The notes under the pieces were generated by a model that searched no databases, was not told the DNA's origin, and worked only from the letters and a program-made list of their open reading frames with translations. A program made the position numbers and the translations under genes. This document shows, in pieces, positions 4,176-38,420 of a stretch of DNA of 39,559 nucleotides. The stretch's first letter is position 1. Each line of letters opens with the position of its first letter. This DNA is from Macrostomum lignano. Its lineage: Eukaryota. The stretch lies in assembly GCA_002269645.1 (NCBI GenBank), contig NIVC01000033.1:1055067-1094625 (forward strand), given 5' to 3'.

Positions 4176-5480
4176 TCAGTTGGACACAGACACTGGCGGC
4201 AGGCTCCACTCTGCCGGGATGGACTTGAAGAAGGCGTGCTCCAAGGCCGCGCTAAGCGTGACGCGGTCCTCGGGTTCGTACTCGAGCATTCGCAGCATCA
4301 GGTCGAACAGGTCTCTTGTGTCCGGTGTCTCGTCTCGCATGTAACGATGCAGCGGTTTGCAGTTCTCGCGCACGTAGCGACCCTCGTTGCTATGGTAGTC
4401 CCAGTCTAAACGGCCGTGCCAGAAGTAGCCGGCCCTGGAGTTCCTGGTCATGCGGTAGGGCACGTGGCCAAGTATGCGCTCCATCATGGCCAGGTGTTCG
4501 CGATTCTCGTGCGTCTGGAATAACGTGAAGCCCGTGTAGAGCTCAAACAGGATGCATCCGATGGACCAGACGTCGCACGGCTGCGACCAACCCAGCTCTA
4601 GAATGACTTCAGGAGCTCGATAGTGTCGGGTGGACACCACGGCAGAGTGGTGCTCGTGATCAAAGGTTGCCGAACCAAAGTCGATTAGCCGGATATCCGT
4701 TCGATCAAGCATTTTTTCTTCTTTCTTGCGCTTTGGATTAACAAAGGTTGAATAGGTCGACCGAAGAAGCAGAATATTTTCCGGCTTTAGATCCGTGTGC
4801 GTCAGCTGGTTGGCGTGCATGAAGGCCACTGAGTGCACCAGCTGATAGGCAATGTGACGCACGTGCTCTATCGGATATGGCGCAAAGTCGTTCTCCTTCA
4901 GAAAGTCGAACACAGACTTGCCAAGAAGGTCAAAGACTAGGCAGATGTGGCCATAGAACTCAAACCAGCTCAACAACTTTATGCACAAATGCAGACCTGA
5001 CGGGTCTTTTTCCTCCAGCTTCTTCAGCACGTTGATCTCCAGCTTGGCTGCTTCGCGATACTTTTCCACATTTTTTATGATTTTTACCGCTACTCGACGC
5101 TGAGCAAAATCCTGCATATCGGCGCACTCTGTCACTTTGCCAAATGTGCCTTCTCCGAGCGTTTTTGAGATCCGGTAGCGATTCTTCAGCACATCGCCGT
5201 ATGCGTAGATCAGGTGACCGTCCGAATCGTCTCGATATGGCGACTTTTCATTGCTAAGCAGGCCTCCGCGTCGACTGCGGCCGCTGGTGACGCTCTGCGC
5301 CGTCGACTGTTCGGTTGTAACCTCTGATGTCCCCGGCTGCTGCTGATCTTCACCGCGCGGAAGACTGATCAGAGACTTTGAACTGGAGTTATTTTCTATA
5401 CCGTCAAATGCCCGCTGACTATTGTTGTTGGTGACATTGTTTGCTCGGCGCCTTGACGAACCAACGTGTCTGTTGAGCAT
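4176..5480 (-). CDS. CLK: CDC-like (LAMMER) dual-specificity protein kinase, kinase domain region; the frame stays open upstream to ~5650
   Basis: [34 protein letters not shown], the LAMMER signature [11 protein letters not shown] and the DSDGHLIY pre-kinase motif. No intron in the kinase domain. Confidence 0.97.
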
Positions 5481-5632
5481 GGCGGTATTTGGAGCTTCAT
5501 CGCCTTCACCAAGTGACTTTTTGCGCCTGTACCGTCGCGACGATAATCCATGGCCTGAAGCAGCAGCTGCAGCCTCTTCTTGGCGCTGATAAGCAAGATC
5601 AGAAGAGTCCGATATGCTTTTTGTAATGTCGG

Positions 5633-6298
5633 TCCAGCGACACGCAGTTCAGCCTTCTTCAAGTGCTGTCCCTCAACAGTGGCTCCGACAACGGCTGTTG
5701 TTGTGTTAGCCGACGCGTCCACCGAATCATAAACGCTTGGCTCCTTGCCGCTTGCGCCACGGTCACGGTTTACTGACGGCTGCTGCTGCTGCTGCTGCGA
5801 TGCTCTCGGTGGTTCGGCCGTGGGGATTAGAGGCGGTGGAGGCGCTACAGACACTACGGAGGAGCGGTTGCCGTTTCGCATTGCCAGAGAAGCTATTTGC
5901 TGACCCAGCCTTTCCAGATCGCCCCGCAGCTGATCCAGCTGACTCTTCCGGCAGTGGCGGCCCAGGCCAGTGGAAGAATCTTGCCGTCCAGGCATCAGCT
6001 GCTGCTCCTGGGCATCAGAATTTGATGACGGATCAGGATCAGCGTCTTTGAATGTCAACTGAATGGCGGCCTCAGTCTTTGATCCTTTGTAACATCGTGA
6101 CCTGCGGCACTTACGCCTGGCTCGGTTGTGCTGATGCTGCAGAAGCTGCTGTTGCTGCTGCTGCATTTGCTGCTGGTACTGAGGCGATGCGATCATTGCG
6201 TCCTGTGTCATAGGACTAACTGACTGTCTGTTGCTTGATGAGTTTCCGCTCCGAGTGCTTCCAGTGCTGGAGCTGGTGCTCCTGCTGTTACTGAGGTA
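5633..6298 (-). CDS. Probable Ser/Gln-rich N-terminal extension of the CLK kinase, in a different frame from the kinase ORF
   Basis: Frame of ORF 5396-6211 is open from 6298 ([13 protein letters not shown]...MTQDA...polyQ...[10 protein letters not shown]). It joins the kinase frame ([26 protein letters not shown]...) if one C is added at 5631-5632, or via a ~90-nt GT-AG intron. Confidence 0.6.
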
Positions 6299-8699: not shown

Positions 8700-10585
8700 C
8701 GTCAGTGACCCCATTCCCAAATTCGTCCCCAAATTCATCAGTGATCCCATCCCCCTAATTCATCAGTGACCCCATTCGCAGATTCATCAGTGGCCCTATT
8801 CCCCAAATTCATCAGTGACCCCATCCCCCAAATTCATCAGTGACCACAATCCCATATTCATCAGTGACCCCAACCCCAAATTCATCATTGACCCCAACCC
8901 CAAATTCATCAGTGACCCCAATCCCAGATTCATAAGTGACCCCAATCCCAAATTCATCAGACCCCATTCCCATGCAGATTCATCAGTGACCCCATCCCCC
9001 AGTTTATCAGTGATCCATTTCCAGAGTCATCAGTGACCCCACTCCCAGTTTATCAGTGACCCCATTCCCAGTTTTTCAGTGACCCCATTCCCAGTTTATC
9101 AGTGACCCGATTCCCCGTTTATCAGTGACCCCATTCCCAGTTTATCAGTGACCCCATTCCCAGTTTATCAGTGACCCGATTCCCCGTTTATCAGTGACCC
9201 CATTCCCAGTTTATCAGTGACCCCATTTCCCGTTTATCAGTGACCCTATTCCCAGTTTATCAGTGACTCCAATCCCAGATTCATCAGTGACCCATTTCCA
9301 GATTCAGCAATAACCCCATTCCGATGTAGATTCATCAGTGACCCCAGCTCCTAGATTATTCAGTGTCCCCATTCCGAGATTCATCTGCAGTGACCCCATT
9401 CCCATGCAGATTCATCAGTGACCCCATTCGCATGCAGATTTATCAGTGACCCCATTCACATGCAGATTCATCAGTGACCCCATTCCCAGTTTATCAGTGA
9501 CCCTATCTTCAGATTCAACAGTGACCCCATTCCCATGCAGATTCATCAGTGACCCCATTCCCAGTTTATCAGTGACCCTATCTTCAGATTCAACAGTGAC
9601 CCCATTCCCATGCAGATTCATCAGTGACCCCATTTTCATATTCATCAGTGACCCCATCCTCCAGATTAATCAGTGACCTCATTCCCAGATTCATCAGTGA
9701 CCCCATTCCCAGTTTATCAGTGACCCCATTCCCAATTTATCAGTGACCCCATTCCCAGTTTATCAGTGACCCCATTCCCAATTTATCAGTGACCCCATTC
9801 CCAGTTTATCAGTGACCCCATTCCCAGTTTATCAGTGACCCCATTCCCAATTTATCAGTGACCCGATTCCCCGTTTATCAGTGACCCCATTCCCAGTTTA
9901 TCAGTGACCCCATTTCCCGTTTATCAGTGACCCTATTCCCAGTTTATCAGTGACTCCAATCCCAGATTCATCAGTGACCCATTTCCAGATTCAGCAATAA
10001 CCCCATTCCGATGTAGATTCATCAGTGACCCCAGCTCCTAGATTATTCAGTGTCCCCATTCCGAGATTCATCTGCAGTGACCCCATTCCCATGCAGATTC
10101 ATCAGTGACCCCATTCGCATGCAGATTTATCAGTGACCCCATTCACATGCAGATTCATCAGTGACCCCATTCCCAGTTTATCAGTGACCCTATCTTCAGA
10201 TTCAACAGTGACCCCATTCCCATGCAGATTCATCAGTGACCCCATTCCCAGTTTATCAGTGACCCTATCTTCAGATTCAACAGTGACCCCATTCCCATGC
10301 AGATTCATCAGTGACCCCATTTTCATATTCATCAGTGACCCCATCCTCCAGATTAATCAGTGACCTCATTCCCAGATTCATCAGTGACCCCATTCCCAGT
10401 TTATCAGTGACCCCATTCCCAATTTATCAGTGACCCCATTCCCAGTTTATCAGTGACCCATTCCCAATTTATCAGTGACCCCATTCCCAGTTTATCAGTG
10501 ACCCCATTCCCAGTTTATCAGTGACCCCATTCCCAGTTCATCAGTGACCCCATTCCCAGTTTATCAGTGTCCCCATACCCAGATT
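8700..10585 (+). repeat. Satellite of 23-28 bp units (gtgaccccattcccagtttatca) with nested 75-bp and 687-bp higher-order repeats
   Basis: Base unit 23 bp with 24- and 28-bp variants. Identical ORFs at 9446-9676 and 10133-10363 (offset 687), and the rare variant gcaataacccc recurs at the same offset. Confidence 0.95.
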
Positions 10586-10888
10586 CATCAAGACCAAAAC
10601 AGATTGTTTATACTTATTTGATATTTTGCCTTTTGAGGCGGCAGTTATATTCGATTCAGAGCACCTGGTGCCCCGAGTCTAATCGCCATCTTGCTTTTCA
10701 TGCCTCGAGGGCCAGGTGGGCGAGGAGCCAGGCAGCTTCGGCGGGTAATTAAAAACGGAAATTGTTTTGACAAAGAATGCAGATGCAGATTCTCTTGTGT
10801 TCTGATGGCGAGCGGAGAAGTCTGCTTATTTATGAGGTAACCAGGGTACACAGCTCCACGGCTGCAAAACAGCGCCACCTACATTCTT

Positions 10889-11232: not shown

Positions 11233-13577
11233 GTGACTTGCTAATCATTGCTGGCAAATCTCGGTGAGCAGTTCGCCTCCAGGCGATTCTCGCGCTCCCG
11301 TCAGTCAACCTGAAAAAGACTAAAAGTCAATAATTAGAATCCACGTCGCGTGTGAGCTGTGAGGCGCTGAACAGAGACATTTGAGTTGACTGCCCTGTAA
11401 AGTGTGCCGGCTGAGTGAGGCTTGGTCAAAAGTGAGAAAAAACCGAAGTTACTCAGAGCTCGTGAGTGGGTGTGCATAATCGATCCGATTCCCAGCGAGT
11501 CCAAATGCCAATGCACTGCTCTTGGCTGAGCCAAGTGTCAAAATGAATTTGCTTGAAGGATGCTGAGAATGGTACAGAAAAAACCCGTGTGCGCCGGAGC
11601 TGCTAAAGGCAAGGCGGAGTCAACTCGCGCAATGCGGCAGGTGAGCAGAGGCAATTTTTTAGACAGGTTGTTGCATTTTTCATCCGGCCGATAAGACGGA
11701 AGAGGCCGGCAGGATTGGCAGCTCCTCGGAGCCTCCAATGTCGCCCCCCTGGACTTGATGGCACTGGAGACTCGAGGGAGGGAGAGGAAGATGTGGGAGG
11801 TCTCTCAGCAGCAGATGAGAGGAGCGGATCAAGGGGGTGGGGGATGATGATGGAAGGAAGCAGAGAGAACCTTGGCAAGAGGCTTAGCGCAGGAAGAAAA
11901 AATCGGGGAAAGAATCCTTGCAGCTCTCTGGCCGAAGCAGAAGCAGAGGGAGCAGGAGCTTTCATGGAACTGATAAGTGGAGACAGGCAGCTGCAGTCGG
12001 GAGCTGGCCGAGGTGGAGAGAGGGCGGAGACGAGAGAAAAGAGAGAAGATGAGGCCGGATTCGGGCACAGCTTGCTCGTGCCTGAGTGCGGCGAGTGCCA
12101 CGGTTCGCTTCGCCCGGCCCGAGCTGGATGGACTGAAGGAGGAGGCCGCAGCAAAGCAGGAGCAGAAGAAAGAGACCCGCTCCATCCACTCCGGGCAGGA
12201 TTGGCCTGGCTCTTAGAGACCCTAATGGAGGATTCATTCCGAGACACGGGGTCTGCTCTGCCGTTGCCTCATTCCTAAGAGCTTCACCCGCGTTCTCCAC
12301 TTCCTTCTAGTCTTCTAGTTCTGCTAAAGCTCCAACTAACCATAAAGGAAGGTCGTTGAAAACAGCAAAGGCCTTGGGCTGAAGGGTTACGAAGCAGACC
12401 CCGGGTGTGTGTGGTGAGCTGTGCGCATGGTGAGTATTGAGCCCCTGGCGGAGGTCTTGCTTTGTGTGGAATGGATCGGTCTGGGGTGAGTGAGAAGGAA
12501 GGAGGATGGGGTGGTCTTTCGGGCGGCCCCTGCCCAACCCACCCCACGGGCCAAACGCGTGACTGAGTAAGAGATGTACAGGGCCATCCCTCCCATTCCA
12601 CAGCGTTCCCTTTCCACCTCTGCTGTGGGTGGGGGGAGGAAAGGGTGGCTCTGAGTCGTGTGGCTGAGCAAGCAAGCGCAATGGAACCTTCACAGGGGCC
12701 TTCACTCCCCTTGCTCCAGTGAGCTCCTTCCTTCCCCGGGGTTCCACCAACCCCCATCGTATTCGTCAGTGAAGGAAGGCCAAACGACAGGAGAGGATGA
12801 GAACCGCGAAGCTCCTTCTCCTCTACCCCTGGCGCAAACGATTGAAGAGCAAAAACTCGCCAACAGCAATGGGCCTCCATGCAAAGACTCCAACGAGCTG
12901 AAGGCCTGAAGCCAGGCAGCAATTCTCCGACTCCACAAGACCCTTTTGCTGCTCAGAGTTTAAGCAAACTTCATTTAACGTTTCTTCGAGCTCAACCACT
13001 CTGCGTCAATTCTCCTGGCTCGGCGCCTGCCTGCAGTAAGTCTGTCTTGATTTTAGCTTCCTGGAATTTTATTTCTGATCTCTGTGCAGTTCCCCGGGCA
13101 AATACTCGTGTAAGGTTACAGGAGCGGCGGGCCAACCCCTTGGATAGTGGAACAAGCTCGACACACACCAACAGTTCCTTCGCCGCATTCCCCGCCCCAA
13201 GCCGCACCCACGGGCTTCTCTCTCATTCCCCAGCCAGCCAGCCGACTCCCGCTTTGCTGGTGAGCTCAGGCAGCTGACAAAAATCAATAAAAAAACGAGG
13301 AAGGTAAAGGGAGGACGCGGCGAAAAAGGGGCCGGATCATGCCAACTGCCGCTCTATTTTTCTTCCTCTTTCCCCCTTTTCTCAACAGTGGGCTGATTGA
13401 CTCTTAGATCGGTTGGAGCACATCATGGAGTAGGAGCAGCGGGGGTACGGACTATGGATCTCGTGTCCTGAGTTGGTGACTGCAAAGCTCCCAAATCCCA
13501 GTCCAATCCTTTATAAGCTTGGCGTACACCCGGCCCTGCCCAAACTTCGTGTTTACCTACAGCCAGCCAGCTCAGCC

Positions 13578-16500
13578 ATGAACTCAGGAGGCGGCGGGAG
13601 CCCGTTCTACCACTGCCAGCTGTGCACCAAAGCCTACTCCTCGGAGAAGAGCCTCAACAAGCACATGCGCAAGAAGCACGGCATCGGCAGGGAGCAGCAG
13701 ATCCATCGATCTCCAAGCGCGAAGCCGAGCAAAGCTTCTACTGAAGAGACGGTGCAGTCGCCGAGTAAAATCCAGGTGAGCCGTCCGCCAAAGGCCGCAC
13801 CCAAGCAGTCTCAAGCTGATGAAGATATGGCGATCGTCTGTCCAGAGTGCGGCGGCACAATTAAAAGCAAAAAGGGCGTTGCTAAGCACTACATGTGCTT
13901 TCACAACATTGTATATTCGGCCTGGAAGGACGGCTGGTTCGGCCGCAGCGTCCGCCTGATGGACCTGACTCAGGCGATGATTGGCAGGTTTTACGCCAGC
14001 GGCGGCGGCGCCCTTCGCGAGTCTCTGGCGAAGTGCCCGGATGCGGAGCCTGGATCTGTACCGGTAGAGATGGAGGACGAAGAGCGAAGCCAGAGGCCTG
14101 AGTCAGATGAAGACAAAGAAACTGATGAAGCCGTTGAAGCAGACGCTGTCCAACTGGTGGTAGACGAAGGCCACTCTGCTGAAGAAGATGATGAAGAAGA
14201 AGGCCCCCTGGTATTGGATGGAGCTGATGAGGACCAGCAGCAAACTTCTGGCCTGTCGCTGGACAGCAGATCGGTGAAGCCTGCAGCCGCCGTACCCGAA
14301 GCTGCTCCCATAGTATCAATATCTCGCCGACGTCGTTCAAAGCTGAAGACTCGCTTGGCTGTAACTTCGCCATTTTTCCATGGCAAGGATGGCAAACTGG
14401 AGTTCAATACAAATGAAGACCCGCTTGACATCAACTGCCCATTCTGCATCGTGCACAAGACCACTATCAAGGGCCTGGCCAAGCACTGTGTAAATCATCA
14501 CCCGGAGGAATATTCCAACTGGAAGGATGGCAGCTTTGGCAATGTTCAACTGCGCTACATTCGGCCAAGCGAGCAGCAACTCAGCGATTCAATCAGCTGT
14601 TTCAATTCTACGCAAGTAAAGCGAAATGCAAAGAAACAGAACCAGATTTCCGAGACAAAAACGCAACAGAAGCAATTAGAGAAGCCAAAGCAACTGGATA
14701 GTCAACAAAGGGCGGAAACTCTGCCTTTTTCACCTGGATTGAATCTCATAAATCTTGTTCCGTGTTCAGTTTGTCACAAGATGGTGCGGCGGCAGTGTCT
14801 GGCCGGGCACTGTGCCACGCAGCACCCAGAGCAGTCGGATGTTCCGCCAGCTGGTCCAGCCATCAGCGTTAGCAAAGTAGAATCCTCGCCCAGCAGCAGA
14901 AGAAAATCTGAGCTGATGAGCGCCTTCGACGACGACAAGCAGGCCAATCCGTGCCCATTCTGCGGCGAGCTGATCTTCTCCAAGGGCATGGGTAAGCACT
15001 GCATCTACTTCCACAACGACCAGTACCAGGAATGGAAGGCTGGAAAGTTTGGCAGCGTGCCGCTCAGATTTGTCCCGAGCCAGATAGCCGGCACCGCTGA
15101 CAGCGACTGGGCGGTAGACACTTCAGGCAGAGCATCTAAGAAGCGAGACTCGACAATGAATACTGGCATGAGCATTGTCTTCCCTACTAGCGAACAGGCT
15201 CCAGACTCCTGGATCACGGAGGCTCCGTCGACTAAGACTCACAGTGGACGCAGCGTGACCCTTCAGATTAAACCCAGCTCAGCAGATCAAGGTGCTTCAA
15301 TTCAGCAGACTCTTGAGCGCAAAAGCAGCTCCTCCCCATCCTTTGTGCTGGGCATAAAAGAAGGGATTAATTCCCAAGGTCATGAGGATGATGATGAGAA
15401 CGGCGCCTTGCTCATCGACTGCGATGACGAAAGCGCCGACGAAGGCGACATTTGCGACGAAGATGCCGCCTTCACTTGTCACTACTGCGATGCCACTTTC
15501 GACACGTCAGACGAACTGAAGCTGCACTTTTCACAGAAGCACATCGAGGAAGGGGCGAAGGCAACCTTCGGCGACCAACAAGACAGTAAGCAAGCAACCA
15601 GCAAGAAGTTAATTAGCAGTCGCTGCCATTCATCTGGTCGCTTCATCTGCGATATTTGTCACACGCCCTACCCGTCCAAGAGAAGTCTGAGTCAGCATTA
15701 CCGTATTCACAAGTTCGACCGACTGTCTTCGAGCTCATCCGCCCTCGGTGGTGCAACTGGAAGCAGCAGTACTGAACAGCGCTCAGCTGACATCGACTCT
15801 AGGAGCATGGAACCTGGAGAGTTGGCTTCATCTTTAGCGCGTCGCACATCTGAAGCTCACAGACCAACTGCGAATTTGGACTCAAAGTCGATTCAGAATG
15901 ACCCATCAAACGGTGATGGTCGCCTTCGAATGTCATTCAATGCTGACGTTTTAGATGTTGCGGCTCTGTTCACAGCGGAATCAAAAGTAACTTCTTCAAC
16001 AGCTGATTGCCCGAAATGCTGCAAAACATTCAGCGACAAATGGCTTCTGCTGGATCATATGACTCGCTGCTTTGCTGAGCCATTGTCCCGAGGAAAGCTC
16101 GACGCGAAAGATTTGGCTGCCCTGGCTGGCGTCGAGGATGACGCTGACACCAAAAGTTCAAGTCCACCAATCGAAAAAAGCCATTTTGACTACGAATCGC
16201 AGAAGATGCTCAACGAGAACAAAGAAGAGGTCTACAAATGTCGATTCTGCGATAGAACCTTCAAAACTTCGTCACACATTCGCAACCACGAGAAATTCTG
16301 CAGCAACGACAGCACGACTCGCGTTGTCTACGCCTGCGAGGTGTGCAAAAAGCAGTTCTACATGAAGTGCCACCTGGCAGTCCACATGAAAGTCCACAAG
16401 ATGTCGCTCGAAAACGACCCAGAGTCTGGCGCTATCAGCGGCAAAGCTGATGAAAAGTCAACACAGCCTGAAAAGTTTGAGTGCAAGCAGTGCGAAAAAT

Positions 16501-17738
16501 CGTTCAGTTCCAGCGCCAACCTGCTCAAGCACAAGGTAGTGCACACCAACTCCTCGGTCAGATGCAAGACGTGCAACCGCGAGTTCAAGATGGCGTGCCA
16601 CTTGGCTAGGCATTTCTGCAGTGCGCTGCTGCCGGGAAGTCAACAGCCGGCTGTCGAGCACTCCGAAACTGAAGAGATGAACAACGAGGGCAACTACGAA
16701 TGCGACCTGTGCCACCGGACATTCCAGTACGCCGGCAATCTGACGGTGCACAAGCGCTTCTGCCAGCAGCACGGCACGGACAGTTCGGCCGCCCCGGTCG
16801 CCATTCTATTGGACGCCGAGGATGAAGGATTCGAGTGCGGCATGTGCAACGAGACCTTTAGGGACAAGCTGGCGCTGGAAGTTCACGCCTCAACCTGCCG
16901 GCTCACAGACTGCAAGCCAGCCGCGGTCGTGTCGGCGGTGACCTTCGCCGACGGCTACGCGAGAGCCAGCCAGTTCGAGTGCCGTCGTTGTCCTGCGAAA
17001 TTCTTCAGCCGAAGCGAACTGCTTGACCACATGCGACAGCACGGCTACACGGCAGGCGATGCCACCGAGTCAAAGAAGCCGGCGCCTCAGCAACCGCCGC
17101 CAGCAAAGAAATCGCGGCTGCATCACAGCTCGAATGCGGAGAGTCCGCTGCGATTTCAGTGCGACCTGTGCTCATCGCAGTTCTCATCTTCGCTAGGCCT
17201 AGTGGTGCACAAGTCCAAGTGCCACCCGGATGTTTACGGACCGGGTCATCGGCAGAGGGAGCTGCAGCAGAAGAGGAAGAGCAAGAACCGGTTAATCGCT
17301 CAGATTCTGCAGATGCCGGACCAACGGAAGTCTGTTGCTGCTGGTGCTGCCACTCAGGCTCAGGCAAAGTTCGACCCCAGGGTGGCTTCGTCGGCCGCGG
17401 CACAGCTGGTGATCACGAAGTCCGGATCGTCAAAGTCTAAGCCGCAGGCACCGGTCCTGCCGCCTCCGGGTCCTCCCCTGTTGTCGTTGCCGAACCGGTG
17501 CCAGCACTGTCCCAGGGCTTTCCTGACGCTGTCAAAGCTGAACGAGCACCTGGCCAACGTACACAGCAAGGCTCCGGTTGGCAAGCCGGCTGGCGTAGCC
17601 GAGATGAGCTCGAAGGTCGACAATGACAGCGCTTCTCCGCCAGGAGGCTTGGTGCTGGACATCAATAGCGACGCTGATGATAACAACTCCGAGGGGACAG
17701 CCAATCGCCCTGACAACGACGCAGTGCTGGAGGATGCC
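13578..17738 (+). CDS. Multi-zinc-finger protein, main coding exon (17 C2H2/C2HC fingers)
   Basis: ATG at 13578 follows the acceptor cctacag (~13562). Seventeen CxxC...H...H/C motifs, e.g. CQLCTKAYSSEKSLNKHMRKKH and CEVCKKQFYMKCHLAVHMKVH. Donor GCC|gtaagt at 17739 (phase 0); the ORF tail beyond it is intron read-through. Confidence 0.93.
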
Positions 17739-17882
17739 GTAAGTGTTCTCGAATGTGTTTGTTTTAATTCATTTCTTTTGTTCAACTTTAAACAGTGTAT
17801 ACTACTAGCACCTAGAATGAGCAGTAGCAATGAAAAAATGATTGAAATTCGAAATACTTAGAATTTTTCTTTAAATCTTCAG

Positions 17883-17984
17883 TTCTCGGCCGCAGATGCC
17901 TATCTGTGCACTGAGTGCGAGAAATCGTTTCCGTCTTTGGACCTGCTCGGACGTCACCTGAGTTCTGCTCATGAAATTCAAGAG
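17883..17984 (+). CDS. Zinc-finger protein exon 2 (18th finger)
   Basis: Acceptor tcttcag at 17881-17882, phase 0. Reads FSAADAYLCTECEKSFPSLDLLGRHLSSAHEIQE, then donor gtaaat at 17985. Confidence 0.8.
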
Positions 17985-18009
17985 GTAAATAGTTTGATGC
18001 TTTGAACTG

Positions 18010-18278
<269 letters not shown>

Positions 18279-19181: not shown

Positions 19182-19893
<712 letters not shown>

Positions 19894-20341
19894 AATTTAT
19901 CTACCTTAGTGGACACGGACACAGTATTTGTAGGTATAGCTATGAAACAGAAGTCGCGAAGTTGCATTGGTCTACATCCAAGTCTGCCAGTTTTAATAAG
20001 ACTTTCAAAGCCGTTCAGTTGGTGGCTGACTTTGGTGCATCTGTACTTTAAGCTGTCAGTGCAAGCATATTGTGCGTGCACTAAGAATGGGTCTTTTAGG
20101 TAGGAAAATGAAGTGTATTGTTATAGCATAGTGATGGACATTTGAATAACGCAAGTATACATAAAGTCTTAAAATGTTATATAGTACTGTCTGCTCCTTA
20201 ATTTTTTTTTAGTATTGCTGTCTAAAATGAAAATGAAACGCAAAGGTTAAAAAATGTTCACTAAGATGCGGCATTGGTTGTGCTGGCTCAAATCTATGTT
20301 AAGCTTTGTCATTGCTGCTATATAAGTGCAGTCTTCAATTC

Positions 20342-22219
20342 CTACTGACTTCTTTGGACAGCTTTCTGCCAGTCGTAATTGAAAAGATCCTCCAGGCCCC
20401 AGGGCAGGCGCTCTTCGGGGTCCTTTCGCGGCTTGATCTTCGAGCGGACCTGATTGGCGGGCTGGTCCAAGATGGCTGCTGCAGTAGCCGTCGCGTTGCC
20501 AGCGCTCTGCTCGGAGGTCTGCTCCACGGGTTTCGGAGTGGACTCAGCTGTCGGCGGGGAGGCCGACTCGGATCCGGAGTTTCCAGCGCTCTGCTCGGAG
20601 GTCTGCTCTACAGGTTTCGGAGTGGACTCAGCTGTTGGCGGGGAGGCCGACTCGGATCCGGAGTTTCCAGCGCTCTGCTCGGAGGTCTGCTCTACAGGTT
20701 TCGGAGTGGACTCAGCTGTTGGCGGGGAGGCCGACTCGGATCCGAAGTTGCCAGCGCTCTGCTCGGAGGTCTGCTCCACAGGTTTTGGAGTGGACTCAGC
20801 TGTCGGCGGGGAGGCCGACTCGGATCCGGAGTTGCCAGCGCTCTGCTCGGAGGTCTGTTCTACAGGTTTCGGAGTGGACTCAGCTGTCGGTGGGGAGGCC
20901 GACTCGGATCCGGAGGCGTTGGACACTTCGGTAGTGGACTCCGTTGGTTTGGGCAGATCGTTCGGTGGCTCCTCAGTTTTTGCTTCACTAGGAGTCGGTG
21001 AGGTCTCATTTTCCGGTTTGGCTTCGTCAGAATTGGAATCAGGCGTCGGCAGTTCATTCGCTGTGGTGTTCTGAGCGACAGACTCCGACTTTTCGGGAGC
21101 CTGGTTGACTTCACTGGAGTTACTGGGCGGCTTCACTTCGACGGCTTCCCCGCCGCTAGCAACTGGAATGCCCGGAGATTCGGCCGTGACCGCGACTTTA
21201 GCGAGTGCTTTGGCCCGGGCCTCCTGGTCCGCAGCTGTTGGCGAATCCAGCGACTTGAATGCGTCGCCAGTGAGAGACGCGGCCCCCGCTTTGCAGATGA
21301 AGGCGTGCCGCTCGTTGCAGGCCGAGCCAACCAGAGTGTCTCCGGACAGCGTGACGCAGTTCTGCTGCCGCTGATCCCCGGATTCCGCGTCGCCCTGCGC
21401 ACCCGGTTGACCGTCGGACCATCTGGGAAAGCCGGAGTGCTTGCCGGAGAAGTCTGTCCATTGGTAGCAGAGCTCGCGGCCCTCCTCGTCCGGATTGCAG
21501 GGGTTAAGCTTGACGAGGCCGAGCCAGACGGGTTGAATTTCGCAGGCGTCTGTCGACAAGTCCAGCGTGTTGAGGAAATGAAGCTCCTGCTCGCTAAGCA
21601 CCGAGACCAGGTTAGTCGAGTGATTCTGACAGTAGAAGTTCGCTTCAATAAAGTTGACCTCAAAGCCGGAGAACAGGTAGCAATGACCCTGAAAGAATTT
21701 CATTCGCGACGGGCACTCTGGCTTTTCATAGTTGGTCTGTGCGACTGACGACTTGCAAATAAACGGGTTCTGCTCGTGGTAGAGGGCATTGTACCAGCTC
21801 AGCTGCTCCGCCCGGATCAGCGGCTTGTGGATGGACGGCTCGCTGGAGAACGCGTGCTTGCTGAATCCGCCAGCTGAAGCGAGGCTCTCGTCGGTCCAGG
21901 CGTAGCCGGCCGAGTCGGCCAGGCGGCCCAAGTCTTTCGCGTAGCGGCCAATCCAGACGCTCTTGCAGAGCGACAGCTTGCCGACTAGGCGGTTCTCCTG
22001 ATCGTCGGCAATGGACACCAGATGGCCGCCCTTCTCTTTGCAAGTCATCTCGCCGTCGTACCAGAATGACGACTGGTTGTAGTAAGCATAGCAGGAGTCT
22101 TTATAGAGCAGCCAGTCCCAGTCGCAGCTGCTCGTGGAGACCACAGGCGCGAGTAGTAGCAGTAGAAGGAGCACGGCCGCTGCAGCCAAGAGTCCGGATG
22201 TTAATGGAATGTTTTGCAT
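20342..22219 (-). CDS. Secreted protein with two C-type lectin-like domains and a mucin/proteoglycan-like repeat tail (625 aa, single exon)
   Basis: Hydrophobic signal peptide. CTLD1: CYAY..W...C..KGGHLVSI..VWIG..FICK. CTLD2: CYLF..C..NLVSV..VWLG..C..C..FICK. Five 28-aa repeats follow; no transmembrane segment before the stop. Confidence 0.92.
   Translation of the reverse strand: MQNIPLTSGLLAAAAVLLLLLLLAPVVSTSSCDWDWLLYKDSCYAYYNQSSFWYDGEMTCKEKGGHLVSIADDQENRLVGKLSLCKSVWIGRYAKDLGRLADSAGYAWTDESLASAGGFSKHAFSSEPSIHKPLIRAEQLSWYNALYHEQNPFICKSSVAQTNYEKPECPSRMKFFQGHCYLFSGFEVNFIEANFYCQNHSTNLVSVLSEQELHFLNTLDLSTDACEIQPVWLGLVKLNPCNPDEEGRELCYQWTDFSGKHSGFPRWSDGQPGAQGDAESGDQRQQNCVTLSGDTLVGSACNERHAFICKAGAASLTGDAFKSLDSPTAADQEARAKALAKVAVTAESPGIPVASGGEAVEVKPPSNSSEVNQAPEKSESVAQNTTANELPTPDSNSDEAKPENETSPTPSEAKTEEPPNDLPKPTESTTEVSNASGSESASPPTAESTPKPVEQTSEQSAGNSGSESASPPTAESTPKPVEQTSEQSAGNFGSESASPPTAESTPKPVEQTSEQSAGNSGSESASPPTAESTPKPVEQTSEQSAGNSGSESASPPTAESTPKPVEQTSEQSAGNATATAAAILDQPANQVRSKIKPRKDPEERLPWGLEDLFNYDWQKAVQRSQ
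20495..20914 (-). repeat. Coding 84-bp tandem repeat, 5 copies (SGSESASPPTAESTPKPVEQTSEQSAGN)
   Basis: ggccgactcg recurs at 20561 and 20645 (84-bp period); the frame is preserved throughout. Confidence 0.95.
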
Positions 22220-29371: not shown

Positions 29372-29475
29372 CTGTGGTTTTTTGAAATATCGTTGCGTTG
29401 TGTTGTGTCAAATAATCAACTTACTGCATGAAGATAGTCATGCAAGGATGTCATTATAAAACAAACTATACTCAC

Positions 29476-31159
29476 CCAGAACTCCGCCAACATCGGACCA
29501 GAACTGCTCGGGTGGGTAAGAGTATTTCTCCACAGTGCTGACGCCTTCGTTCCCGTTAGCCAGTAGTACAACTCGCGTAAACAGCAGGCGCGTGCTCAGG
29601 CCGAGCTTGAAGAGGTTCTTGCCGACTCGCTCCAAGTCGCCATAATAGACGCTGTTGTTTATGGCCCATTCCTTATATAAATTGCTAGTCTTGGCCACTT
29701 CGTCCAGTTTGGCTTGGAAGTTTTTGTCGCTGAATTCGGAGATAAGCTTGGTGGAGAGGCTGCTGAAGGGGTAGGCTACAGTCTCGCATGGTTTCAGACA
29801 GCTTTCCTTATAGCCTTGGTTCGCAGCTAGAAATGCCTCGGCGTCCTTGTGACACTGGCGTCTGGTCAAGATGCCAGTAGCTTGGGCCAATGCCATCGAA
29901 TCCAGGTAGGTAGTGTTCCATTTGCTCCAGTAGGAGTAGTTGCAGGGAAGTGTCAGATTTACTGTGGCGTTCCAGCAGAGCGTGAAATTCGTCGACGCAA
30001 CGTACCGATCGATGTACTGAACAGTTTTATTGGCGACAGTCGTGTATGGATACTGGATGAGACTGGGATCGATTTCGTGACAGTAGGGCTTGGTGCTGGC
30101 CAGAGACGACGGCACGAGGTACTTCTCAGACAGGCAGGAACACCTGCCGACTATGATCTCCTGGGCCTTGACACTTTCGCAGGCATCTTTAGTGTAAGCA
30201 AACGATCTCAGTTTATCAAATTGCAGCAGGGTCAAAGGGCTCGGATTCTCAGCGCACTTTTTTACAGGCGAGTTGATCGACTTGGACCGTTCGATTCCGG
30301 CGCTAATAACGTAGTTGCGCGTCTCCGATACCTGCACATCCTGCGAGTGGTCCGGAACCGTGTTCGGCGGATGAACGTACATGGAGTAGCCAAAGTTGAA
30401 GTCAAACCTCTCCATATTGGTAATTGCTTTGTAGTAAGGAACGCTCGGATTCTGTACAAATATGAAGGAGAACAGCATTAGATCCAGGGCGCTCTGCTCA
30501 CCAGCCTGGAATACCCGCCTGTCTGTCATAGAAACGGTAACGCAAGCTTCACTCAGAGGATCGAAGAAAATCGTCATGTTCCAGGGTCCGCAAGTTTCGC
30601 CCCGAAAGTTGCAATAGAGGACGGTTGTCACCGGATTCCGTGTCATGTTGGCCTCGACCGTGTACTTACGAAGCGAGTAGCGAGCAATCTCTGGGGCGAT
30701 GAAGCCCTCACCAGCGGCTGTCCAGAAATTGTACGTGTTGCGGAAGGCTGTCTGGACGCTGAGATCACCGCCTAGTGATGGTATGGTAGCGTTGGAGTCC
30801 TGCGTACAGGCCAGATCGCGACGGCACCATACGGACTCGTGATAAGGTTGATTTGGGCAGAATGTCACGTCGGGCAGCACAAACGGCTCGCTGTTGTACT
30901 TCGTCTCCACGGTGACAATGTACTGCAAATAGTTTATGGCCAGGAGTATGATGTGCACCCCGAACGCAATCAGGGCGCAGCAGATAATGAGCATCCAGAG
31001 ACGACGCACTGCTTTGTTCTCTACTCGCAGCTTATAGAAACCATGTGCCGTCGTGTGCTGTAGAAAATTGTTGAGAAGAGGCTCCGGTTGTTGGCCTCCT
31101 ATAACTGGGTTATCTACCGACTCCTCCGCTTTGGGAAGATTCTCTTGAGAGCTCGACAT
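29476..31159 (-). CDS. DEG/ENaC (amiloride-sensitive channel family) paralogue 1, main exon; 637 aa spliced
   Basis: TTAHG pre-TM1 motif, TM1, FVLPDVTFC, FDPLSEACVT, Cys-rich thumb, and WSDVGGVLG|gtgag donor at 29475 (phase 1, 104-nt intron). A likely 5'-UTR intron lies at 31190-31282. Confidence 0.93.
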
Positions 31160-32347: not shown

Positions 32348-32496
32348 GTAAGACTTCATCTCTCTCTGAAATAACCGTAGCAATAGTTTTATTAGTAGCC
32401 AGAAAATACATTATAATTATAGCTTACACAATTTCATCGTATAATCTTATAATTAAACTGTCGATGTCTGTTTCTATTTGCTCGAATAGGCTAGAG

Positions 32497-34125
32497 ATGG
32501 ACGAGATTAAAAAGGAAAATGCTGCTCAAAGTGGCATTACATGCGATGAACCCCAGGACTCCGACAAAATACCTTCGCAAGAAGACGGAAACGGCAGCGC
32601 TGGTATAGTATCCGAGTTCTTCGTGACTACAACGGCTCATGGTTTCCTGCATATTGTTCAAAACTCGATTTACCTCCGCATTGTCTGGGCTCTGCTTATT
32701 GTGATCGCGTTTGGAGGATTTGGCCTCCATCTGAGCACTTTGGTGGAAAAGTACTTGTCCTATCCGCTGACGACAGAGATCCGGTATTCGGAGGTTGAGT
32801 TCGAATTCCCTGACGTGACGGTCTGCCTTACAACAAAGTACAGGCACTGCCTCAACATTGACGTCCGCGATCCAAGAATCGGTCTGGTGACTAATAGCAC
32901 TGTGCCAAGTCTTGGAAATTACCACTTCTGGTCGGCACTAAACAATACCTTTACGTTTTGGAAGCAGGCTTACGGATTGAAGGATGACCTATTGATCAAA
33001 TACAGCACTGTCGGTATGCGAGGCTACACGTACGAGATCAACATAACGAATCGGCGCACCGATATCGCCACGGGAATCGAGTACAAGCAAAAAGCTTTAA
33101 ATCTCGACAATGTCGTGGCCTACGACGACCCGAGCTGTTCCGCTGCGCCACTGTGCGACCTAAGGACCGAGCCATCAATTCTGTCAACGATGCCATGGGT
33201 CTCATACTCAGCATATTCGATCAGTACATTGGAAATAAGACCACTCCGCTGATAGACCGAGCCTGGGTTGCCGGCGTGCGAGTCACGCTTAGCGAGCCGA
33301 ACGCCCGGCCAAACTTGATCAACTCATTCATCGTGCCACCTGGCACCATCAAGCATACAAAGGTTTCCATGACCAGGCAGGAAAAGCGAAAGACGCCAAA
33401 GCAGGATTGTTACGAAAGCTCTAACGACCTGCCCATTCAGGTGTTGAATCCGGATGGCACGCTATCCAGCTATCGCTATACCCAGTCTGACTGCAGAGAG
33501 CTCGAATTACAAAAATATGTAATGCGAAAGTGCGGCTGCGTGAGCAACTTTAAACTGGTCCCGGCCGAGTTCAAGTCGCTGTCTGGCAGCCTGAAATATT
33601 GCCTCGACTTGGACCCAACGATCCTCAAGGCTAAGAAGATTTTTCTGGCCAACAGTTCCTCTAACGGGTCTCAGACGCTTTTAGTTGAAAAGTTCGATTC
33701 ATCAGTGGTGCCCATGGAATTGATCCTGGCGCAAACTGGTTTTCGGGCCCAGCATGAGTGCCACTTGAAGGCTCTTGGGGATTTTGTTGCTTCGGCGGAG
33801 ACCTGTCCACCGAGCTGCGTAGCGTACACCTACCAGGCCTACTCGTCCGAGTCTCTGTGGCCGTTTCAGATCGATCAATACTTTGCCGAGCGAATTCTCA
33901 ATCTGTTCCAGTCGGCCTACAACTACAGCCTGGAGAAGGGCCTGCCGGTGCCGCTGTTCAAATGCTTCGAGGCTGGCGCTACCATCACCTCGAAGGACTA
34001 CTGGAAGATGATCGGCTACTTCAACCGGGTGGTGATATCGTCAAATAGTCTGCGGGGCACGCAGTACCAGGAAAAGGAAAGCTACCCACTGGCTGGTCTG
34101 TTCTCCAATATGGGCGGCATTCTTG
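32497..34125 (+). CDS. DEG/ENaC paralogue 2, main exon, interrupted by one apparent 1-bp deletion at 33129-33131; 583 aa if corrected
   Basis: TTAHG, FEFPDVTVC, YDDP/ELFRCATV across the frameshift, CGC thumb motif, and LFSNMGGILG|gtgag donor at 34126 (phase 1). Start at ATG 32497 after the acceptor at 32488-32489; 5'-UTR intron 32348-32489. Confidence 0.88.
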
Positions 34126-34207
34126 GTGAGTGGCAGACTAGACGCTACGCGTAACCGACGCGTATTGAAATTTTCAATCATAACTCCCTCAAATCTCACA
34201 CTGACAG

Positions 34208-35355: not shown

Positions 35356-35866
35356 ATGAATAAAGCGGAGGCTTTCTCACCCGAAGGCCATCAGAAGGCG
35401 ATCGTCAACAGTCCATCTAAATCTTGGGTTTTCTGTCGAGTTATTTGCGTGGCCATAAGTTTCGTCCTGTTGCTATCCAGTTACTATGGCATCAAGTTCA
35501 TGCAGAGCTCCATCAACGCCCAGCAAGGCCTCGGCACGGCCAGCTTAGCCGTGGTGTACGCGTCCGTCCTGTTCTCATCCTTGGTCCTGGCCAATCCGCT
35601 GGTTGAGACAATCGGCCCAAAGCACTGCCTGTCCTTTGCTATGCTGGGCTACATGAGCTACATCGCCTTCAACGCTTATCCGTCATTCTACACACTGATT
35701 CCGGCTAGCATGATTGTTGGCCTGTGCTCTGCTCCGCTGTGGGCGAGCATGGCCAGGTATAACATGCAGCTAGCAAGCCTGTACTCAGCAGCAGCTGGCG
35801 GTGGCAAATCCTTGGCGGCATCCTCTGCGCTGGTGTTTGGACTGTTCTATGCGATATCTAACACGT
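35356..35866 (+). CDS. UNC93A: UNC93-like MFS membrane protein, exon 1
   Basis: QSSINAQQGLGTASLAVVY, YTLIPASMIVGLCSAPLW and FGLFYAIS match UNC-93 family motifs. Donor gtgaga at 35867 (phase 1). The symbol denotes the closest family, not proven orthology. Confidence 0.9.
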
Positions 35867-35957
35867 GTGAGACGCTTTCAATCCAATACTGTACCGTTTC
35901 ATCAGCTTTGGGACTGAGATTCAAATATGATTGTGCGACGACTGGGAAGATGGTAAA

Positions 35958-36215
35958 GATCTTGGAGAAAGGGCGACGATCATAGAGAGGACAGTGACAG
36001 AGAAAGGGCGACGATTTTCGAAGAGGGCGACGATTGGGGAGAGATTGACGATCTTGGGAAAGAGAAACGACCTTGGGAAAGAGCGATGATCTTGGAAGAG
36101 GGTGACGATCTTGGGAAAGAGAGACGATCTTGGAAGAGGGTGGCGATCTTGGGAGAGGGTGACGATCTTGGGAAAGAGAGACGATCTTGGGAAAGAGCGG
36201 CGACCTTGGGAGAGG
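35958..36215 (+). repeat. ~19-bp degenerate purine-rich minisatellite (gacgatcttgggaaagaga) in UNC93 intron 1
   Basis: Repeating acgatcttgg core; the ORF translation repeats every 19 aa (3 x 19 bp). Confidence 0.85.
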
Positions 36216-37485: not shown

Positions 37486-38042
37486 AAGGGGCGCCAGCAC
37501 CAAGGGGCGCCAGCATCAAGGGGCGCCAGCATCAAGGGGCGCCAGCACCAAGGGGCGCCAGCACCAAGGGGCGCCAGAACCAAGGGGCGCCAGCACCAAG
37601 GGGCGCCAGAACCAAGGGGCGCCAGCACCAAAGGGCGCCAGCACCAAGGGGCGCCAGCACCAAGGGGCGCCAGCACCAAGGGGCGCCAGCACCAAGGGGC
37701 GCCAGCACCAAGGGGCGCCAGCACCAAGGGGCGCCAGCACCAAGGGGCGCCAGCACCAAGGGGCGCCAGCACCAAGGGGCGCCAGCACCAAGGGGCGCCA
37801 GCACCAAGGGGCGCCAGCACCAAGGGGCGCCAGCACCAAGGGGCGCCAGCACCAAGGGCGCCAGCACCAAGGGGCGCCAGAACCAAGGGGCGCCAGCACC
37901 AAGGGGCGCCAGCACCAAGGGGCGCCAGCACCAAGGGGCGCCAGCACCAAGGGGCGCCAGCACCAAGGGGCGCCAGCACCAAGGGGCGCCAGCACCAAGG
38001 GGCGCCAGCACCAAGGGGCGCCAGCACCAAGGGGCGCCAGCA
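37486..38042 (+). repeat. GC-rich 16-bp minisatellite (caaggggcgccagcac), ~35 copies, in UNC93 intron 4
   Basis: Near-perfect array with a few variants; degenerate ggggcgcc cores lie just upstream (37350-37480). Explains the six overlapping ORFs. Confidence 0.97.
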
Positions 38043-38420
38043 CACTTCATTTGCCAAAGCAAGCAGTATAACATAAGGTTTGGCTCAACCCTCCATTAAT
38101 AGCGTACAAAATTTGCACTTGCTGTAGTGACCTCACTAAACCGTCTGAAATGCACAGTTTGAGCAGATAGTGAGAGTGCAATGCTAAAAATACACGCAGT
38201 GGGCTGAATATCGTGGAATCTTTGCTCGGAAAATATTATAGCTAAAATTAAATATGGCTGCAGCGTCAGCCATAATGTCCCAATGTCTGCCTGCCCTTGG
38301 GCCACACCCTTCTAGAAGGTTTGTAGACAGCAAAAGAGCAGCAGAACCTGGCTGTCTAGTTGAAACAATTTCTTATCCTGAAGCTGAATAGATAACTTGA
38401 ATCCTCAAATCCCTATGAAG

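Follow-up and report, generated by a model that had tools for sequence, protein, structure and literature searches.

Can a C2H2 zinc finger carry, directly behind its last zinc ligand, a further conserved element that existing domain models do not contain? The question is raised by a stretch of the genome of the free-living flatworm Macrostomum lignano (39,559 nucleotides [nt]; assembly GCA_002269645.1, contig NIVC01000033.1, positions 1,055,067 to 1,094,625; hereafter the window), in which one gene for a multi-finger protein encodes three fingers that are followed by the same tail. A sequence-only reading of the window had proposed that finger and tail together form an undescribed module. The finger with its tail proved to be a real conserved unit. 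The units are read here, at a probability of little more than one half (∼0.55), as a C2H2 subtype that is confined to one lineage and extended at its C-terminus, a binding unit most likely for protein, either a partner or another copy of itself.

Three fingers with a common tail are encoded in one reading frame

All three modules are located within one long open reading frame (ORF) on the + strand (13473-17861; 1,462 codons). Module 1, CPECGGTIKSKKGVAKHYMCFH-NIVYSAWKDGWFGRSVRL, is encoded at 13839-13958 (+), module 2, CPFCIVHKTTIKGLAKHCVNHH-PEEYSNWKDGSFGNVQLRYI, at 14436-14561 (+), and module 3, CPFCGELIFSKGMGKHCIYFH-NDQYQEWKAGKFGSVPLRFV, the best-conserved copy, at 14952-15074 (+). In-frame translation of 13839-15074 reproduced exactly the finger and tail units that had been quoted earlier. 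The tail comprises ∼20 residues and follows the last His with the motif H-x3-Y-x2-W-K-x-G-x-F-G-x(1,2)-V-x-L. When all six frames of the window were searched with the regular expression Y..WK.G.FG, only three matches were obtained, all in the zinc-finger ORF, and each begins three residues past the His that serves as the last zinc ligand in a Cx2Cx11-12Hx4H finger. The ligand spacing (Cx2Cx12Hx4H in units 1 and 2, Cx2Cx11Hx4H in unit 3) fits the C2H2 pattern C-x2-4-C-x12-H-x3-5-H. The earlier count of 15 further fingers without such a tail was confirmed: the regular expression for fingers finds 16 in the exon-1 ORF, to which CKTCNREFKMACHLARHFC, missed because it overlaps a match, and one finger in exon 2 have to be added.

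Micro- and minisatellites are abundant in the window, which made it necessary to check whether the similarity of the modules is trivial and could be explained by a non-coding ORF, by a tandem duplication of very recent date, by low sequence complexity, or by chance. No observation supporting this explanation was made. The tail motif did not occur in 300 base-shuffled windows or upon shuffling the residues of the ORF 20,000 times, and no tandem repeat was called within 13839-15074. The units are 500–600 nt apart, with linkers of 110–125 residues between them, and the sequences preceding the three fingers are EDMAIV, PLDIN, and KQANP. Pairwise identity among the units is 47–50% at the protein level and 57–62% at the DNA level, with 16 columns being invariant (C, P, C, K, G, K, H, H, Y, W, K, G, F, G, V, and L). 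Because the codons differ at 3–5 of the 16–17 identical residues per unit pair, the units are regarded as duplicates of considerable age that selection has maintained, rather than as a repeat of recent origin. Zero occurrences upon shuffling, the lack of a tandem repeat, the DNA identity of only ∼60%, and the differing synonymous sites thus refute a trivial origin, as do the match of the ORF to annotated M. lignano proteins and the conservation of the modules in three further paralogue families; its probability is considered negligible.

Beside the tail, the modules have a characteristic recognition helix, in which K-G-[VLM]-x-K-H is nearly fixed, with a conserved hydrophobic residue (V, L, or M) located three positions ahead of the first His. 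In each of the three window copies, and in the majority of family members, the base-contact positions +2, +3, and +6 of this helix are K, G, and K. The modules carry a net charge of +2 to +5, and one of the linkers a net charge of −21. The usual finger Phe, thought to be absent from all three fingers, is indeed missing from units 1 and 2, where Ile and Lys, respectively, occupy its position; unit 3, however, has Leu-Ile-Phe nearby.

The modules are conserved where the surrounding sequence is not

The window protein was aligned with two M. lignano paralogues, P0023 and P0003 (35–44% identical overall; identities are given in this order). The finger of module 3 is 100% and 95% identical, its tail 88% and 75%. 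For module 2, the values are 95% and 91% (finger) and 59% and 36% (tail), and for module 1, 95% and 32% (finger) and 72% and 34% (tail). The remaining N-terminal region is only 17% identical to either paralogue, and the C-terminal finger-rich part 29% and 19%. The modules are, therefore, islands of conservation among diverged linkers. That the tail might fail to be conserved in homologues, which would have spoken against the module, was not observed: identities of 91–100% in the fingers and 36–88% in the tails of modules 2 and 3 have to be compared with 17% in the surrounding N-terminal sequence. At a protein identity of 35–44%, the synonymous sites would be saturated for a ratio of nonsynonymous to synonymous substitution rates (dN/dS) between the paralogues. 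Throughout the family, the two Cys, the two His, the Lys of W-K, and two Gly are invariant, and the Pro, the Gly of K-G, the Tyr, and the Trp are conserved to ≥90%.

Conservation also extends to sequences adjoining the modules. Module 1 is followed by a conserved amphipathic stretch, MDLTQAMIGRFYAS, which reaches to ∼14000 (+). Module 2 is preceded by an N-terminal extension specific to this copy, SKLKTRLAVTSPFFHGKDGKLEFNTNEDPLDIN (14337-14435, +), which is 79% and 73% identical in the two paralogues (SKLKT.LA.T.PFF....G..EFN.NE.PLDIN) and recurs in P0006, the protein with only one module. At 14763-14825 (+), a decayed fourth module was found, CSVCHKMVRRQCLAGHCATQH, which has kept the finger and lost the tail. 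It aligns with a complete module of P0003, CPICGKQISAEGITNHCSIYHLKEYNDWKEGKYGRVS, and the ancestor therefore had four modules, one of which lost its tail in the window gene.

Existing domain models and structures cover the finger only

Whether known models account for the modules was assessed with Pfam, using the isolated units and allowing E values of up to 10. As the sequence-only reading had anticipated, there is no existing Pfam model that covers finger and tail, and none reaches its threshold on the isolated units. The zf-C2H2 model itself (PF00096) listed none of the three units even at this permissive limit. The highest score was that of zf-Di19 (PF05605, a two-finger model of 54 positions; cut-off 27.5 bits), which gave 23.0 bits for unit 2 and 15.5 bits for unit 3, did not list unit 1, and aligned only via model positions 3–30. 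Zn_SUZ12 (PF23320) reached at best 21.2 bits (cut-off 28) and ZNF512_C2HC (PF21276; cut-off 27 bits) 15 bits for unit 2 and 14.4 bits for P0006, both again restricted to the finger. The models zf-C2H2_jaz (PF12171) and zf-met (PF12874) and those of the U1 type gave no match on the units.

The same picture emerged from comparison with solved structures. Sequence matches in the PDB cover only the finger, the nearest being ZNF512/ZNF512B (2ctd and 2gqj; E 0.016–0.076), with CP.C....KTI.GL.KH in common. A Foldseek search of the PDB with the predicted structure described below, the AlphaFold2 (AF2) model from an 11-row alignment, returned no match below E = 2.5; the non-significant matches include ZNF512, ZIM-1 ZF1-2-CTD (8yvb), and the U11-48K finger, the latter two with E values of 4–7.

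The complete module was found in M. lignano only

A profile built from the three units was run against 1.84 billion representative proteins without a word index, which resulted in 20 matches at E ≤ 0.001. No more than four protein clusters contained the full module (E 8e-66 to 9e-13), every one of them from M. lignano, in agreement with the earlier guess that the DNA originates from a flatworm. One of the clusters, P0002, represents the window gene. P0001/P0023 is a paralogue with three modules and 44% overall identity, and P0003 (Mlig018642, Mlig004437), 35% identical, has four modules. The fourth cluster, P0006 (Mlig021826), is a protein of 450 amino acids whose only module corresponds in type to module 2. 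The segment G-x-[FY]-G-x(1,2)-[VI]-x-[LIF] was recovered from Macrostomum only in this search. Word-indexed protein searches with the N-terminal region, with the 11-unit alignment, and with the C-terminal finger region returned nothing, missing also the M. lignano proteins present in the collection; this search mode is thus blind to the module family, and its empty result was given no independent weight as a sign that relatives are lacking. Nothing was found when the literature was searched for the Mlig gene identifiers.

Several metagenomic and Logan proteins without names (P0007, P0010-P0012, P0015, P0016, and P0018; library-wide E 1e-6 to 1e-3) contain fingers of the form CPxC...G-[LMV]-x2-H-x4-H-P-x2-[YL]-x2-W. 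They resemble the Macrostomum modules in the finger and, as far as W-[KLR], in the first part of the second helix, but they lack G-x-[FY]-G-x-V-x-L and occur in unrelated contexts. When the Macrostomum profile was compared with this set by hhalign, columns 2–35 aligned with a probability of 98%, the alignment ending right after W-K; because the set had been picked from matches of the query profile, this score is inflated by selection. The finger and the beginning of the second helix may, thus, belong to a looser and wider class, and their recurrence outside flatworms is weak. Pfam covers only the finger part of these CPxC...W proteins. P0007 comes from a Logan contig (600 amino acids), and one protein of the set combines three CPxC...W fingers with GIY-YIG and T5orf172 domains, an architecture reminiscent of a virus or a mobile element.

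Other matches were rejected. The beetle multi-finger proteins P0004 and P0005 match via the finger part only (profile positions 2–29). P0008 and P0009 are bacterial-looking proteins with repeats (e.g., WSDGTYGM and NWxIGNFG; W-x-x-G-x-[FY]-G) that mimic the W-K-x-G-x-F-G stretch by chance or convergence, and they have no fingers. The flatworm zfp-1/zfp-1-1 family was also dismissed: the three fingers of its members form a cluster, have the helices QRSNLQR and RKDHLxR, and are not followed by a comparable tail (PMC5927768).

Structure prediction suggests order in the proximal half of the tail

An AF2 model of module 2 from the single sequence was uninformative (predicted local distance difference test score [pLDDT] 48). 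A second model, for the region 14337-14594, made use of a shallow alignment of 11 rows of orthologous and paralogous units and reached a mean pLDDT of 65 and a predicted template modeling score of 0.55. In this prediction, the finger consists of two short strands (residues 32–33 and 41–42) and a helix (44–54), with block pLDDT values of 75–87. A second helix (residues 56–63, PEEYSNWK) belongs, together with the finger helix, to the blocks with the highest pLDDT (∼80–87). Directly past the last His, Tyr and Trp, at positions i and i+3, are located on one face of this predicted helix, which is ended by the invariant Gly. The N-terminal extension is modeled as a low-confidence β-hairpin (strands 13–15 and 21–23), and a short helix was placed at residues 79–85.

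The proximal tail is, thus, predicted to be ordered and to continue the finger. Of the proposal that the whole tail is a folded part of the module, this proximal half with its second helix is retained; the distal G-x-F-G-x-V-x-L appears as low-confidence coil without secondary structure. Membership in the C2H2 superfamily is suggested by the ligand pattern and by the predicted fold.

What the modules may bind

If the units are indeed a C2H2 subtype that binds protein, one copy would be built from a finger that runs into a second short helix (Y-x2-W-K) with a Gly stop, followed by an aromatic-Gly pair and the alternating hydrophobic stretch V-x-L-R-[FY]-[VI]. The module would have arisen by internal duplication in the ancestor of a small Macrostomum gene family, originally with four copies per protein, of which the window gene would retain three and a decayed one. 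The modules would have been maintained by strong purifying selection and the intervening linkers left to drift. Each module would then act as an independent small, zinc-dependent binding unit within a large, probably nuclear, multi-finger protein, and every copy would offer the same surface instead of reading different DNA triplets. Such sameness would follow because K, G, and K are fixed at the contact positions, because the copies are isolated, and because the distal segment alternates hydrophobic residues like an edge strand. The most likely ligand would be protein, and self-association or scaffolding could come about if the strand-like distal segment paired with another copy or with a partner. 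The sequence-only reading had suggested a distinct module for binding protein or RNA rather than for canonical DNA reading; of this, the conserved unit stands, and its binding role, like the fold of the distal tail, we infer.

Several observations weigh against the units being protein-binding and lineage-restricted. The distal tail (G-S-F-G-N-V-Q-L-R-Y) is modeled as coil with a pLDDT of ∼54–72, falling from 72 to 54, and confidence in the AF2 model as a whole is moderate (mean 65), the alignment being shallow and composed of paralogues only. Nucleic-acid binding fits the basic net charge of the modules equally well. The Drosophila precedent considered below has an N-terminal and not a C-terminal extension and is not homologous. 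The lineage restriction is based on a single profile of three sequences, which divergent relatives below ∼35 bits would escape, and Macrostomum species besides M. lignano may be absent from the protein library. Finally, the tail of module 2 is not certain to be present in every transcript, since the gene model of P0002 excises 14488-14769.

A basic helix (K-G-x-x-K-H) and a basic tail (W-K and L-R) could also make the module a single-finger binder of nucleic acid, which would grip DNA or RNA in a non-canonical fashion, or double-stranded RNA (dsRNA) as extended-helix fingers do. Precedents for pairing a single or double finger with an extension are GAGA factor and the ZF-CTD of C. elegans ZIM/HIM-8. 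The net charge of +2 to +5 is consistent with this possibility, as is the invariance of Lys at helix positions +2 and +6, and the acidic linker (−21) could serve to mask the modules. The remaining protein, rich in classical fingers, is probably chromatin-associated, and ZIM-1 ZF1-2-CTD and the U11-48K finger are among the structural matches. However, these matches are not significant, none of the jaz, zf-met, or U1-type models recognizes the modules, and their Hx4H spacing differs from the Hx5H of the dsRNA-binding class. Sequence-specific recognition is, moreover, disfavored by contact residues that are identical in all copies. Nucleic acid as the ligand is, thus, a possibility to be kept in mind but a doubtful one.

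It appears quite unlikely, in turn, that the tail is a structural prop without a ligand of its own, its Tyr, Trp, and Phe replacing the missing core Phe and the function residing in the finger alone. Such a role would be in line with Ile (unit 1) and Lys (unit 2) at the canonical Phe position, with Tyr and Trp (i, i+3), directly behind the last His, pointing to the same side of the predicted second helix, and with the CPxC...H-P-x2-[YL]-x2-W fingers of unrelated metagenomic proteins, which share just the second helix. Against a prop, the distal G-x-[FY]-G-x-V-x-L-R-[FY]-[VI] is conserved too (75–88% in module 3 among the paralogues), and AF2 leaves this segment unpacked; a conserved, solvent-exposed stretch of alternating hydrophobic residues rather suggests an interface. 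Furthermore, the paralogue alignment indicates that the finger ligands at 14763-14825 persisted after the tail had been lost.

The host gene and its neighborhood

The host protein is an uncharacterized protein of ∼1,450 amino acids with many C2H2 fingers, and all modules are located in its first exon. Exon 1 (13578-17738, +) extends from the probable translation start, the Met at 13578 (MNSGGGGSPFYHCQLC...), to a GTAAGT donor. It is followed by an intron of 144 nt (17739-17882, +; GTAAGT...TCTTCAG, donor at 17739), the corresponding exon junction in P0002 being LEDA/FSAADAY, and by exon 2 (17883-17984, +), which encodes the last classical finger (FSAADAYLCTECEKSFPSLDLLGRHLSSAHEIQE) and was located by tblastn of the P0002 C-terminus against the window (97% identity, 17883-17987). 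The window ORF and P0002 (UniRef A0A1I8GYC8, an M. lignano “C2H2-type domain-containing protein”) are 97% identical. Pfam recognized nine zf-C2H2 (PF00096) stretches in the whole host protein, the best at residues 1002–1024; this is a whole-protein figure, the positions not being assigned unit by unit. The best jaz and zf-met stretches in the whole protein are at residues 921–941 and 724–747.

The P0002 gene model drops 14488-14769 (282 nt, in-frame, GT..AG) and thereby joins ...GLAKH to FCHKMV.... Excision of this segment would delete the second half of module 2 together with its tail and fuse the remaining half-module to half of the next finger. Because the region is uninterrupted and strongly conserved in the paralogues, the excision in A0A1I8GYC8 is probably an annotation artifact; alternatively, the segment is possibly an excisable in-frame intron.

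In the C-terminal half of the host ORF (16008-17230, +), the second His is replaced by Cys in several fingers (e.g., HMTRC, HEKFC, HKRFC, HASTC, and HKSKC), and the block KFECKQCEKSFSSSANLLKHKVVH...CKTCNREFKMACHLARHFC within this region is strongly conserved across all three long paralogues. No orthologue of this C-terminal finger region was found outside Macrostomum by the word-indexed search, which is blind to the M. lignano proteins. Just 3′ of exon 2, probably within the next intron of the finger gene, there is an (ATCT)n repeat (18010-18276).

Other genes are present on both sides. A kinase ORF (434 amino acids; 4176-5480, −) encodes a complete protein kinase domain (Pkinase, E 1.7e-47) and looks CLK/dual-specificity-like; upstream, a Gln-rich ORF (5396-6211, −) overlaps it in a different frame, pointing to a frameshift or to a separate exon for the N-terminus. 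A secreted-looking protein of 625 amino acids (20342-22219, −) has two C-type lectin domains and a C-terminal part rich in Ser, Thr, and Pro, in which a tandem repeat (20495-20915) consists of five copies of 84 nt (28 amino acids) with 95% matches between copies. Two divergent genes for amiloride-sensitive channels (DEG/ENaC, Pfam ASC) are located at 29438-31159 (−) and 32464-34154 (+); the latter is split over overlapping ORFs (32464-33252 and 33153-34154), implying a short intron or a frameshift. An ORF at 35356-35985 (+) matches UNC-93 weakly (E 4.6e-5; 23.2 bits, cut-off 22.9). Among the abundant micro- and minisatellites are a 23-nt minisatellite of 76 copies (8737-10590), a (CTAT) repeat of 181 copies (19182-19903), and a 16-nt unit of 35 copies (37486-38043), which yields long spurious ORFs on both strands.

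Significance

C2H2 fingers are the largest class of transcription-factor domains in animals, and M. lignano is a tractable model for regeneration and stem cells in which RNA interference and transgenesis are available. It is increasingly recognized that many isolated C2H2 fingers do other things than read DNA, and the module, with ∼45 residues easily expressed, would represent a clean test case for how a finger acquires a new binding surface. A hidden Markov model seeded with the module can be used to annotate four anonymous gene families, the practical value of which is modest, and the analysis of module 2 flags a probable error in the UniProt model A0A1I8GYC8. The significance has to be scaled down because the distribution is narrow and analogous cases exist (PMC12774644).

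Comparison with known zinc fingers

Like classical C2H2 fingers (PF00096, ββα fold), the modules have two Cys and two His in the arrangement Cx2C...Hx4H, and AF2 predicts a hairpin followed by a helix. Classical fingers have a conserved Phe four residues after the second Cys, where the modules have Ile (unit 1) or Lys (unit 2), and they occur in tandem arrays with variable base contacts and TGEKP-like linkers, whereas the modules are isolated, have fixed K, G, and K, and lack TGEKP. Also unlike classical fingers, they continue into a conserved extension of ∼20 residues past the last His.

The best resemblance to the finger part, albeit below threshold, was that of atypical CPxC fingers (zf-Di19, ZNF512 C2HC, the Zn domain of SUZ12, and the ZNF462 fingers [PF23075 and PF23225]). 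These have in common with the modules the C-P-x-C start, the G-L-x-K-H helix, and the Hx4 spacing to the last ligand, as seen when CPTCQAVGRKTIEGLKKH of ZNF512 is set against CPFCIVHKTTIKGLAKH of the module. The matches stop at or just past the last His, however, and none of these fingers contains Y-x2-W-K-x-G-x-F-G. In the ZNF512 C2HC finger, the last ligand is Cys and a second finger adjoins; in the modules, it is His and there is no adjacent finger. The dsRNA-binding and U1-type fingers have Hx5H and an extended helix, in contrast to Hx4H in the modules.

Extra structural elements on C2H2 fingers are widespread and are more common on isolated than on clustered fingers (PMC12774644). A case in point is the single C2H2 domains of the CGx-Phi type in Diptera (IMZF and relatives), which dimerize and are lineage-specific (Balagurov et al., NAR 2026; PMC12774644). 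The CGx-Phi element consists of an N-terminal β-strand and a Cys-Gly-x-hydrophobic motif at a single N-terminal finger, is present in one copy per protein, and is confined to Diptera (PMC12774644). Both these domains and the modules are isolated fingers within multi-finger proteins and carry a conserved, lineage-restricted element beside the core fold; the CGx-Phi domains are located far from the DNA-binding cluster and are used for protein–protein contact. In contrast to them, the modules have no upstream Cys-Gly, their extension, a helix plus a strand-like segment, is C-terminal, each protein has three to four copies, sequence similarity is absent, and the host is a flatworm. The modules are, thus, not classical DNA-reading fingers, and they are not zf-Di19, ZNF512 C2HC, jaz/U1, or dipteran CGx-Phi domains. 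By analogy with the dipteran case, a Macrostomum- or flatworm-specific interaction domain can be envisaged, in which the G-x-F-G-x-V-x-L-R-F-V strand would zip copies together within one protein or across the four paralogue families. Such zipping is rather improbable; if true, it would build multivalent chromatin scaffolds and would represent an independent, C-terminal invention of the finger-plus-strand dimerization principle of the dipteran factors.

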